Numbered from the stretch's first letter, positions 15,934 to 23,730 are shown. The stretch is DNA of 64,000 nt from Oopsacas minuta (GCA_024704765.1 JAKMXF010000312.1:124001-188000), one strand, 5' to 3'. Program-made: numbers and translations. The notes: generated by a model from the letters alone, not told the origin.

Positions 15934-18900
15934 ATGGAGACAAATTTTCAATTTAATCAAATACCAACTGCAACACAGATTTCTACGAATGTAATCACCC
16001 AAGCAAATACAATCTCATCAACACCTATTGTTATACAATCAGCTCCACCTGTTCACGTGCATCCCAATACGGTACCCACGTTGCCAGGGACAGGACAACC
16101 TCAAATGCAAGGATTGCAGAGTATGTGAATTTATTTTTGTCAATATTTGTTGTATAAACAAATCTATTTTTAGATACTCTTAACTCCGGAGCACATCAAG
16201 CCTTATTTTCAATTTTGAAAGGCCTCGATTTACCCAACCTTCCACAAGCCCAGGATAGCAACGTAACTGAGCAAAGATTGGCCGTGGCTCAGCGGCAATT
16301 ACGAGGTAACAAGATGGATATTAACCAATCAGATTGTCAACAGGAGGAATTGAGTGAGCAGAGGTACACAGGTGTAGTTCAGTTACAACCTGAGCCAATC
16401 AATATCCAGGTTAATCCACAAGTAGGCCTACCTCCGATCCAAATTCCTCAACAGCAAATTGTGACAGCTGTACCCGCTCAAACTATGCCACCATTCCACC
16501 AACAAATGCCAATTATGCCACAAGTAAGGTGTTTTGGCAAGTAAAAATGGGGCCTAGAATAATTCACATTTGTTATTTAGGAAACCTCTTATATGGGAGT
16601 GGTACCCGGGACCTCCGTGTTCCCTAAGGACCCTAGGAGACAACCAGAAGCCCAATCTATAGACCTGTCACAGCTCCCAACAGGAATGTTCCCAAATCAG
16701 GTCAGTTACACTTGATGTACATCATATGCCTAGAGGCAGAGAGGGGCAATTAGAATGTATAGCTATGTACATATTTATCAGAGATTTCTGTAATCTATGG
16801 AACACCTTGTTGTAGGTACCCCTTGGTCAACTTCCTGATATCACAATAACAACACAAACAACAACAGCACCTCCTCCAACGCCTATATTACAGAATCCTG
16901 TACATCTATTGCAGACTGTAAATGTTATAAATGCTAATATAACGGAACTAATTAACTCAGCGAAACAACAACAACAACAACAACAAACACAGCCTGTTGT
17001 TATTGGGTTAGTTTCGTATTCCCTCAGGTTGAAAAATTTGCAAGAATACAATCAAACAAGCAAACAAACAAACAAACAAACAAACAAACATAAATAAATA
17101 AACAAATAAACAATACAACACTGATTATATCCCTGTATAGTGATAAACGCAAGGACCCTCCCAGTGATACAGAGACTCTAGCTAAGAACAATGAAGCTAA
17201 AATAGAAATGCTACGTAACAGGCTTAACATATCGTCACCTAATCCTATACCTACTGCTCTGCTACAGACTGATACTACTAATGAACAGATCATTGATAGA
17301 ACATACCAAGCACCCAGGTCCCCTGTTACACCACCTGTAGTCAGTAGTACTTCTAGTAAAAGGTCAGTCAGGGTCCCATCTGTAGTCGATGGTCATATTT
17401 GTTTGCTTAATCTAGAGTGCGTATAAACAGGAGTAATATCAATAGGTTGTAGATACCTGCTTTTGTGTTCATATGTGTCGTAGAGCATTGTATATTGACA
17501 CCTATACACCAGAGGGACACAGATAAATGTCTCGTGCAATCAGAATTGAGGGTACACTATTGGCAAACCCACTAATCTGATGGGGCTAGACATTTGTCAC
17601 ACTTCTTAGAGTTGTGTGGAGATTTCGCTTAGAAGATAGAATTTGTTCCTAGATTTATCACATTCCTAATCTCAGCTTCGGTTGTTATGTAAAGTGGTTA
17701 CTATATAGTTACTAAAATTGTGTCCTATTATAGACACCATCAGAGAGGGAAAGACAGAAGACTTTCTGTTAAGAGCTCAGATGGCAGTGCCACTAGTCAG
17801 TACAGATCTGGAGTAATAAGAGCATACGCTAACCCAACGCGATACCATAAAGAGTCTCATGGTAACACCTCTGGACCCCCCTGACCCCTATTAATATATT
17901 TATGTCCAATAGGATCCTCATTATCAAGGAGGAAGCAGTATCACGTATTTGTGTCTCACTCAACAGCTGATTTTACTTGGGCTAAGGTTAAAGTAGTAAT
18001 GAAACTACGTAACCTTAAATCTCATAGTGTACATGTGGTAGCTAGTTATCACTTCAGACCTGATGGTGATACTTATAATCAACAGGCTATAATAGCTAGG
18101 TTTGTTTGTTTATTGTCTGTTTGTTTGTTTGTTTGTTTGTTTATTTATCTGTTTGTTTATTTATTTGTTTGTTTGCTTGTTTATTTATCTGTTTGTTTAT
18201 TTATCCGTTTGTTTGTTTGTTTGTTTGTTTGTTTGTTTATTTGTTGTTTATTTTGCACTTTCTATTCTCTAGCATGGAAGAAGCATCGATCATATTACTA
18301 GGCTTAAGTCAAACATATCTTAACTCCGACAGATGTCGAAAGGAATGGGAACTAGCTGCCTCTCTTGCTGATAAGAAACAAGCTACAGTAATTATGGGAG
18401 CAGTGAAGCCATGCTCGAGGCCTGAACCTCTGAAAAAGCTTAATTTAATGTATCTGGATTTTGTCGACCCTAAGAAGGAGAGTGTTGTCTGGAAAGTATT
18501 GGTTGATACTATAGGTAGGGTCCAACCCCGTAGGACAGTGGTTCCCAAGGGTCCACAGTATCTCAAAATTTGTGTTGCAGTCTATGGAAGGGGGTCCAAA
18601 TATTAAAATTGACATAGGGGGACAGGGTGTGAAGGTTTGGAACAGCTAGCATTGGACATTCATTGATTCCAATATTAGTACCAATTTTGATTCTATATTT
18701 TATAGCTAATCTGAAGAACCAGATTCATGAATCAAGGGAACATGACTCTAACAGGAAACACAAGAAAGAAATCAAATCCGAACCAGACACTGTCATAACT
18801 TTTGCTACTAAAAAGCCCTATCAAAGAGACCCTCTAGGTAAGTTGTTTATTTGTTTGTTTGTTTGTTTATTTGTGATTTTAATAGGCCTAGAATCTAGTC

Positions 18901-21900: not shown

Positions 21901-23730
21901 ATCTTTTTGGATTTCAAACACGTCTTTTCCATATTCTTTCTCAAACGAGTGGCTGATTGTGTCGCCTGGAAGTTTCCCGCCTTTTCTTACGGGTACAAAA
22001 CCTGCGTTGAGTGCCATAGCAACCGATGGTCCGATTAGGAATCCTCTTGCATCTAATCCCAGGACAATATCGACATTAGTTCCAAAGCTCTTTGCATCTT
22101 CTATCAACAGATTGATTACAGTTTTGAGTAAAACCGGCGATTTCAAAAGAGAGAATATATCTTGAAATGCAATTCCTTTAATAGGGAAATCAGGGACTTC
22201 ACGGATTTGTTCTTTTAGCTGTTTTATTGTCTCTTCTCGATTTGGATTGTCTCTTTTCGCCATTTGTTATTGTTATTAATCTAACTAGTATATACGCCTC
22301 CACAAACGGGGCCTGTGAAAACAGAGCTAATTCCTAGTCCGATACAAATGAATCCCCACAGACGGTGTAGCATTTTTCGGAGTACTTAACACCTCGTTTG
22401 TGGAGGTTACACTCTGTAATTTAGTACAGCTCCTTCAGGGAGATGTGCTAAGAACGTGTGGCATTCAGAGTGGCGTAGACAGAGATGTCCCAAGTGGCTA
22501 ATTTAGCCACCATTATACGTTGTGGTATTACGCCATCTGCATGTATTACGCCATCTGCATGTCAAACAGCCACATTTGCCAGTCGTCTGTCGAACTACCC
22601 TCTAAAGCGCAAATATACAATTTTCACACCTTTAAAATTAGTTCCAGTAGTTAGTTCCAATACCATTTTAGGATGCTTTCAGAATATGGCATGGATTGTG
22701 TCTGGTGTGTCAATTTCTATGATTTATTTGAAGAATATGCGGAAGATGATAAGTTTATGGAACTAGCATTCAAGATGAAAGCATTTGAGAAGAATTCGGT
22801 ATTTGTAATTTGTTATTTTATATCACTGTTAATGGGAAAATTGTTTCACCTCCACGTCTCGTATCAAGTTTACCCGCCACATGAAAAGTGTCATTAGATC
22901 ACCATTTTATCAGTGGAATTCAACTACGGTAGATTCTCCAAATTACAGACACATTGGGGACATCGCTTCTGTCTGCTTCTCGGAGTGTCCGTTTTGTGAG
23001 ACTCCACTGTACACAGTCACCTTCCGTTATGTAGAACACACATGACATAATTATTGAAATACCAGCTTATATCGAAGCCTGTAATTGTACAAATATGGTC
23101 CCAAACCGTCGAAGCAACATATATTCCATCGGTCATATCGATGTAGTTATCACGGTCCCTTGAGTATAGATGATTGTATCTTCACAGACCTCCTCTAACA
23201 AGCTTAAATAGCATATTAGGAGTAGAATCATTGAAATTTCCATGAATTGGACACTTTGTATTTATGGTAAGATAAACACTTAGAAATGGAATGCCATCTA
23301 CCCCCCCCGCATGCTTAGATAGACATCATGTGTGGAGCTGAAATAAGTTTCTCATTAACAGTGGCCTTATTTGTATTTACATATTCTTATTGTGTTTATT
23401 TCATTTGTATTTCAGGGTTCTATTAGTCAAGAAGAATGGGATATAATTGGTCTGTTACCCCTTTAAATTCTGTCCTCTCCTCCCCTGAACTTTGTCACAG
23501 GTGTAAGAATAGGGATCATGCATCATACTTGTGGATTAGACCTCTAAACGCTCCCTGGGGGTGAGTATTGAAAGGTGTCATATTGGGGGAGATGAGGACA
23601 CAATTTATTGCCTCGTAAAAATATTTTTAACAAATTAAAATGCACTTTAGGAATGTATTTGGCCTTTGTATTCAGGAAAAGAGGCTCCAGAGAACAACAA
23701 CAACAACAACAACAACAAAGTGAAAAATAA
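15934..23730 (+). CDS. RNMT: Predicted 19-exon fusion: Q/P-rich N-terminus, TIR domain, acidic linker, mRNA cap guanine-N7 methyltransferase (RNMT); ~1152 aa
   Basis: Exons 15934-16120, 16174-16523, 16581-16700, 16816-17006, 17141-17362, 17734-17861, 17913-18099, 18273-18514, 18706-18837, 18886-19146, 19283-19449, 19513-19848, 20013-20253, 20462-20556, 20674-20852, 21116-21295, 22672-22798, 23416-23449, 23651-23730. All GT-AG and phase-compatible, total 3459 nt. TIR: [14 protein letters not shown]...[27 protein letters not shown]: [10 protein letters not shown]...[15 protein letters not shown]...[12 protein letters not shown]...PGGYLIGTT...[21 protein letters not shown]. The RNMT call is strong; the fusion is a prediction. 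Confidence 0.75.
21379..21529. mobile_element. hAT-type MITE in an RNMT intron
   Basis: 16-bp TIRs CAGCCGTTCCAAACCT / AGGTTTGTAACAGCTG (2 mismatches); no TSD visible. Related fragments near 11.96, 18.54-18.65, 25.9 and 48.9 kb. Confidence 0.65.
21694..22263 (-). CDS. APRT: Adenine phosphoribosyltransferase, intronless, nested antisense in RNMT intron 21296-22671
   Basis: [17 protein letters not shown]...[10 protein letters not shown]...VRKGGKLPG...EKEYG...[13 protein letters not shown] (PRPP-binding motif). Confidence 0.97.
   Translation of the reverse strand: MAKRDNPNREETIKQLKEQIREVPDFPIKGIAFQDIFSLLKSPVLLKTVINLLIEDAKSFGTNVDIVLGLDARGFLIGPSVAMALNAGFVPVRKGGKLPGDTISHSFEKEYGKDVFEIQKDSIEKGQNVLIIDDLIATGGTMLAACELVKALGGNLIGCQLMIELPSLKGIERVTKVFKGIPFKVLINY

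Follow-up and report, generated by a model that had tools for sequence, protein, structure and literature searches.

The genome of the glass sponge Oopsacas minuta encodes a protein in which a TIR domain and a complete mRNA cap guanine-N7 methyltransferase (RNMT) domain are joined in one polypeptide. The gene lies on the plus strand at positions 15934-23730 of the stretch analysed here (GCA_024704765.1, JAKMXF010000312.1:124001-188000; 64,000 nucleotides (nt), hereafter the window, from whose first letter all positions given without a further designation are counted); its product is composed, in this order, of a Q/P-rich N-terminus, the TIR domain, a charged linker and the RNMT domain. That this fusion protein is real and represents the main product of the locus is held with high confidence. 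With modest confidence, the overall best explanation is considered to be a single TIR-RNMT fusion gene whose TIR would serve as a docking or regulatory module. Generally, RNMT is an essential housekeeping enzyme, whereas TIR is a signalling or nicotinamide adenine dinucleotide (NAD)-cleaving module of immunity; their combination is a new architecture made of two known domains and, as far as found, undescribed: the literature search revealed no paper describing a TIR-RNMT fusion, and the first-pass annotation of the window, which was made from the sequence alone, had known of none either.

Gene structure and transcript evidence

The coding region was rebuilt by script from the sequence and comprises 19 exons with a total of 3459 nt (1152 amino acids, aa). 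The frame opens with the ATG at 15934 and its sole stop is the TAA at 23728-23730; every intron is bounded by GT..AG, the phases chain and internal stops are absent. The boundaries are identical to those of the first-pass annotation, which had proposed a stop-free chain of 19 in-phase GT-AG exons of the same length. Exons 1-6 (15934-16120, 16174-16523, 16581-16700, 16816-17006, 17141-17362 and 17734-17861) encode the Q/P-rich N-terminus (aa 1-399), which is probably disordered. The TIR domain is divided between exon 7 (17913-18099, aa 400-461; first half with beta-A and the BB-loop region) and exon 8 (18273-18514, aa 462-542; second half with R482-C483-x-x-E486, CSRP and YLDF). Exons 9-12 (18706-18837, 18886-19146, 19283-19449 and 19513-19848) specify the charged linker (aa 543-841), which contains basic clusters and acidic runs; no Pfam family was matched by linker exons 10 and 12 or by exon 2, the sole N-terminal exon scanned. 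The complete RNMT domain is encoded by exons 13-19 (20013-20253, 20462-20556, 20674-20852, 21116-21295, 22672-22798, 23416-23449 and 23651-23730; aa 842-1152). In exon 13, the conserved RNFNNW block is not preceded by a Met, and the in-frame codon directly 5' of 20013 is TAG; the catalytic domain can therefore not be translated without upstream exons, as had already been stated for this exon in the first-pass annotation. Intron 9 (48 nt) is stop-free in frame; in consequence, the frame from TIR to RNMT continues whether this intron is spliced or not.

Four sequencing runs of one sample and study, none of them recorded as RNA, were compared with the window over positions 15800-21400. The contigs of runs X1-X3 were collinear with the genome and retained the introns; those of run X4 were short and carried exact GT..AG joints at ten introns of the gene, five in the N-terminal part (16120>16174, 16523>16581, 16700>16816, 17362>17734 and 17861>17913, i.e. 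exons 1/2, 2/3, 3/4, 5/6 and 6/7) and five from the TIR through the linker into the RNMT part (18514>18706, 19146>19283, 19449>19513, 19848>20013 and 20556>20674, i.e. exons 8/9, 10/11, 11/12, 12/13 and 14/15). At exons 7/8, 13/14, 15/16 and 16/17, loose ends of X4 contigs read into the next exon; joints of exons 4/5 and 9/10 are unreported, both adjoining microsatellites that were left out of the read comparison. Because the spliced joints were seen in X4 alone (none in X1-X3) and the junction sequences of exons 12/13 and 8/9 are absent from the assembly, the joined form comes from RNA rather than from a retrocopy; judging from its joints, X4 is most plausibly an RNA library prepared from this animal. 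The contig depth in X4 (approximately 1200-2000 at the joints and similar along the gene) was not used, since contig depth cannot rank parts of a gene. The claim of the first-pass annotation that TIR and RNMT form one gene with one spliced mRNA is thus borne out at the two junctions named there for checking, 18514>18706 and 19848>20013.

Conservation of the fusion and its methyltransferase domain

The RNMT family profile PF03291 matched exons 13-17 collinearly (profile positions 11-287 of 315; 77.9, 16.1, 62.6, 43.7 and 14.0 bits; Pfam cut-offs are 26.6 bits for PF03291 and 28 bits for TIR_2). The glycine-rich motif VLDLxCGKGGDL for binding of S-adenosylmethionine and the RNFNNW block align position by position with those of the RNMT chains 8Q69 and 3BGV, and the catalytic motifs are intact. 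The best solved relatives, 3BGV, 5E8J and 8Q69, are deposited as mRNA cap guanine-N7 methyltransferase and are taken by us to be human RNMT; identity to 3BGV/5E8J amounts to about two thirds in exons 13 and 15 (own count from the printed alignments). In a profile search of the 61.46-Mb, 365-contig O. minuta assembly, PF03291 matched this locus only, which answers the question raised in the first-pass annotation whether it is the only RNMT. The RNMT part is predicted to perform ordinary nuclear cap methylation. The guanylyltransferase of the capping enzyme is encoded by a separate gene of the sponge; a RAM homologue was not detected in the assembly, a result that says little, as the same search matched nothing in any control genome either.

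Relatives of the TIR were collected by a phmmer search with exon 8 against 1.84 billion protein representatives, which returned 33 proteins, all of them short gene calls on unannotated contigs; the ten that were looked up came from ENA or Logan assemblies (records of relatives: ERZ25072730, ERZ25068762, ERZ25072283, ERZ26693581, ERZ21784910, ERZ26695579 and GCA_029782515.1). No full-length annotated or named protein with a TIR of the fusion type was found, the word-based search being limited by query length. Common to the relatives are the motifs R-C-x-x-E, CSRP and YLDF; among 26 family sequences (about 20 groups at 70% identity), the columns R, C, E, P, L and YLDF do not vary, and the exon 7 residues H410, F412, H415, S416, T417 and D419 are invariant across six genomes. 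The order TIR then RNMT was kept in all of the six other host loci with enough flank (L004, L005, L007, L008, L009 and L010), in which the RNMT exons follow 0.6-9.4 kb 3' of the TIR exons on the same strand; to look for this architecture in related genomes had been proposed in the first-pass annotation. Locus L004, which belongs to a related glass sponge, retains the complete set of 19 exons in unchanged order. The remaining five loci are far more distant (32-52% identity in the TIR); in L007, a single open frame (P0042) covers N-terminus and TIR, and two short acidic exons precede RNMT, which starts about 630 nt further on. In its best exons, the sponge RNMT is 56-67% identical to that of the distant loci, which does not exceed its identity to 3BGV/5E8J; the linkage of TIR and RNMT is for this reason regarded as ancient.

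Selection was assessed in codon alignments to L004, in which the proportion of synonymous differences (pS) is saturated (0.66-0.77). The proportion of nonsynonymous differences (pN) is 0.086 for the TIR and 0.070 for RNMT, as well as 0.196 for the N-terminus (66% identity) and 0.248 for the linker (59% identity). All four parts of the protein are coding and constrained, the TIR to the same degree as the RNMT catalytic core. The fusion is expressed, under strong constraint and retained in deeply diverged genomes, which implies that in such animals every capped mRNA would be made by a TIR-bearing enzyme.

Further observations concern the family members themselves. The glass-sponge assembly ERZ25071281 contains a stand-alone, degenerate copy of both TIR exons (L017 and L018, 9630-10177; 71-76% identity) that is truncated before the YLDF block; its neighbours are MFS and NHL genes, RNMT is absent within 10 kb, and the copy probably represents a pseudogene or an offshoot with the TIR alone. 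The distant relatives have a common N-terminus with M-x-x-V-x-TAAADTTS, PVGIAQP and DSCDSDQS (L005, 7307-8100; P0042; P0080-P0084; L019, 3224-4306), elements that the glass-sponge protein does not contain. In GCA_029782515.1, N-terminus and TIR are located on one small contig and RNMT on another.

Character and proposed role of the TIR domain

Exon 8 alone reached 31.5 bits with TIR_2; exon 7 scored 14.6 bits and is collinear with it (profile positions 1-41, followed by 49-111 for exon 8). The first halves of the relatives' TIR domains scored 20-25 bits on TIR Pfam profiles; the read-through open reading frame (ORF) P0042, which contains an intron, gave no TIR Pfam match. The characteristic blocks appear in the expected order and were aligned to TLR1 and Toll-receptor-related 2 (TRR-2): HVFVSHS (beta-A), HFxPD (with the BB-loop Pro) and the C-terminal VWxxL. 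Nine of ten matches of the first-half family profile among solved structures were TLR1, TLR6, TLR10, TLR15 and TLR2; this profile aligns LSPxYLxS directly before SEWCHYEL of TLR1, and R482-C483-x-x-E486 is therefore the counterpart of W-C-x-x-E. The second-half profile matched the TIR of TRR-2 (4W8G/4W8H, presumably a Hydra protein) weakly at an E-value of 0.05. No SARM1, bacterial or plant TIR appeared at E-values up to 10 with either half profile or with P0042:195-355 in this sequence-only test.

The first-pass annotation had pointed to the retained DRCRKEW, and indeed R482, C483 and E486 are all present. TLR1 is a signalling receptor and not known as an NADase. E486 is invariant in the 26 sequences, and TLR1 has Glu at the same position (WCHYEL); since TLR-type signalling TIR domains share it, the Glu of C-x-x-E does not mark an NADase. 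In addition, the Trp of WxxxE, four residues before the Glu, is replaced by an invariant Arg (R482). According to PMC10937652, the Trp at this position (W204) is needed for full activity of AbTir.

Judged from these sequence features, the TIR, probably of the animal Toll-like receptor (TLR) type, would be a non-catalytic module for docking or regulation attached to the sole cap methyltransferase of the animal, a proposal to which we give about half of our confidence or slightly less; as a free-NAD-consuming executioner the domain is not read. Tethered in cis, it would most likely act as a docking or self-association module, and TIR-TIR or TIR-partner contacts could set where, when or how actively the methyltransferase works. 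Its role would then be likened to that of the N-terminal regulatory domain and the activator RAM of human RNMT, and the basic clusters of the linker may resemble the stretch that serves nuclear localisation in the N-terminal region of ordinary RNMT proteins. Candidate partners are encoded in the genome, for the assembly contains four TIR_2 loci including the fusion gene: a MyD88-like gene with a Death-domain ORF followed by a TIR ORF (genome G000, C3:185394-186505; locus L015, 2394-3505), a 480-aa ORF with a C-terminal TIR (C343:322061-323501; L014) and a TIR ORF beside HEAT repeats (C221:612153-612926; L016). If docking is true, cap methylation would be linked to TIR signalling partners, of which the genome offers few candidates, one of them MyD88-like.

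Several points weigh against this explanation. The matches to TLR structures are weak (best E-value only 7.6e-4), and the top match of the second-half profile is an unrelated rRNA methyltransferase (RsmE, 5O95), rejected as spurious because the match is short and has no relation in fold. An invariant R-C-x-x-E at the site that is catalytic in NADase TIR domains is what an enzyme would conserve. As to the transcript, the RNA nature of X4 is deduced from its joints, its run record carrying no RNA label; the X4 contigs measure 130-430 nt, so that continuity is established junction by junction and not on a single molecule from TIR to RNMT; and an internal promoter may give rise to an RNMT-only isoform, Met codons being present in exons 10 and 12.

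The best surviving alternative assigns the TIR an enzymatic activity on NAD-capped RNA or on NAD+ at nascent 5' ends: it would strip the nicotinamide from RNA polymerase II transcripts begun with NAD+ and thereby mark them for decay, as a kind of cap quality control. We regard this as possible but doubtful. The invariance of R482, C483 and E486 in 26 members from about 20 lineages and the alignment of E486 with the TIR Glu position are in line with it, and the beta-A sequence FVSHSTxD is similar to FxSH, a motif typical of TIR_2 domains from bacteria; however, the AbTir-type Trp is an invariant Arg here, and no NADase TIR structure matches the family profiles within the E-value range given above. 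The RAI1/DXO family yielded only a sub-threshold match in the assembly (23 bits), which leaves room for a substitute, but this weak match may be a real DXO. PMC10937652 describes a Glu-dependent removal of nicotinamide from NAD-RNA by prokaryotic TIR domains, in agreement with the statement of the first-pass annotation that some of them act on NAD-capped RNA; human SARM1, in contrast, could not cleave the NAD cap in that study, which also took several plant TIR proteins into testing after SARM1. The product reported there, cyclic ADP-ribose-RNA, cannot enter the 7-methylguanosine (m7G) capping pathway; the “coupling” of NAD-cap removal to m7G capping, one of the ideas of the first-pass annotation, could therefore mean quality control only. 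A physical link of comparable kind, between RNMT1 and the deNADding and decapping enzyme DXO1, is suggested by the title “Arabidopsis DXO1 activates RNMT1” in the reference list of the review PMC11253889. A further reading, judged unlikely, sees the TIR as a nuclear cap-surveillance enzyme: fused to the sole cap methyltransferase from an early point in the history of the lineage, it would act during capping and detect or cut polymerase II transcripts that carry an NAD cap or are otherwise mis-capped. A catalytic TIR in this protein would connect a eukaryotic TIR with RNA 5'-end chemistry for the first time and make the role of NAD caps in animals directly testable; cap surveillance, if true, would provide the first demonstration of a eukaryotic TIR working on RNA caps and give the DXO1-RNMT1 pair of plants a covalent equivalent. 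With the docking module as with the catalytic one, the gene would offer a natural experiment on the roles of TIR domains in early animals.

TIR domains are immune signalling modules across life, and RNMT could accordingly be a bait in a guard or integrated decoy, in which an attack on the capping enzyme by a virus or effector would make the TIR trigger an immune or death signal; a guard module had been among the proposals of the first-pass annotation. The age of the fusion and the strong constraint on the TIR are compatible with such a device, and the MyD88-like Death and TIR gene could receive its signal; but the domain belongs to the only RNMT of the genome, whose intact motifs indicate a working enzyme and not a spare decoy, and the TIR evolves slowly and is not diversifying, all of which makes a guard function improbable. 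Least convincing, and in our estimation very improbable, is the assumption of two units at one locus, with RNMT produced mainly from an internal promoter (start at a Met in exons 10-12) and the joints reflecting a minor read-through or conjoined transcript of a TIR gene upstream: the available Met codons and RNA evidence consisting of short contigs, whose depth cannot rank isoforms, would allow it, but exons 8-13 are each linked to their neighbour by an RNA joint or by an intron that stays open in frame, the genome has no separate TIR or RNMT gene of such kind at another place, six other genomes preserve the order with linkers down to 0.6 kb, and the linker evolves as coding sequence under purifying selection.

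Genomic surroundings and comparison with known systems

Upstream of the fusion gene, the last exons of the gene for ribosomal protein L10 (uL16; approximately 15500-15788, plus strand) end 146 nt 5' of the start codon, and RPL10 is found upstream in L004 as well (PF00252 at 280-1390). An intronless gene for an APRT-like phosphoribosyltransferase (PF00156, 60 bits; 189 aa) lies antisense inside RNMT intron 16 (21694-22263, minus strand); the same intron of L004 also contains an APRT gene (16226-16783, minus strand). The intron between exons 4 and 5 measures 134 nt in O. minuta, whereas in L004 it is host to a gene for a PRP39-like HAT-repeat protein (4808-8214, minus strand, between the equivalents of the two exons, 3676 to 8422). 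Several introns of the fusion gene are filled with (GTTT)n/(CAAA)n microsatellites (17050-17110, 18100-18250, 18845-18870 and 20405-20430); the same microsatellite occurs in introns of relatives, visible as LFVCLFVC read-through in P0001, P0002 and L004 (10401-10997). In distant relatives, an NCBI assembly among them, a conserved single-exon gene of approximately 690 aa without family match is positioned tail to tail with RNMT (L005, 15838-17904, minus strand; L012, 1822-4032).

Compared with human RNMT, the sponge enzyme belongs to the same catalytic family, and both have a non-catalytic, charged N-terminal extension; in contrast to the human protein, the extension of the sponge enzyme comprises about 840 aa and includes a folded TIR domain. 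Fusions of the RNMT domain to triphosphatase/guanylyltransferase capping enzymes occur in poxvirus D1 and trypanosome Cgm1. There, the partners are other capping enzymes, whereas in the sponge the partner is an immune-type domain and the guanylyltransferase is a separate gene.

With the TIR domains of TLR1/2/6/10 (1FYV, 4OM7 and 2J67), the sponge TIR has in common the segment LSPxYLxS-xRCxKEW, collinear with LSPNFVQS-EWCHYEL of TLR1; it differs by FVSH for FISY and by Arg for the Trp of WCxxE. Unlike the Toll-like receptors, the sponge protein has no receptor ectodomain or membrane span, and its TIR is contained in a probably nuclear enzyme. The C-terminal block P..L...YLD(F/W)......(V/F)W..L is shared with TRR-2 (4W8G).

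The prokaryotic TIR proteins AbTir and TcpA, described for their deNAMing activity in PMC10937652, share with the sponge protein the TIR fold, the Glu at the catalytic site and perhaps a connection with RNA 5' caps; the sponge TIR differs from them in the lack of a detectable sequence match to NADase TIR structures and in the Arg that takes the place of the AbTir Trp. The Arabidopsis DXO1-RNMT1 pair, as far as indicated by the title cited in PMC11253889, likewise couples a protein of cap quality control to the cap N7-methyltransferase: in the plant, the coupling would be non-covalent and the partner a member of the DXO/Rai1 family, whereas the sponge enzyme is fused covalently to its partner, a TIR domain.

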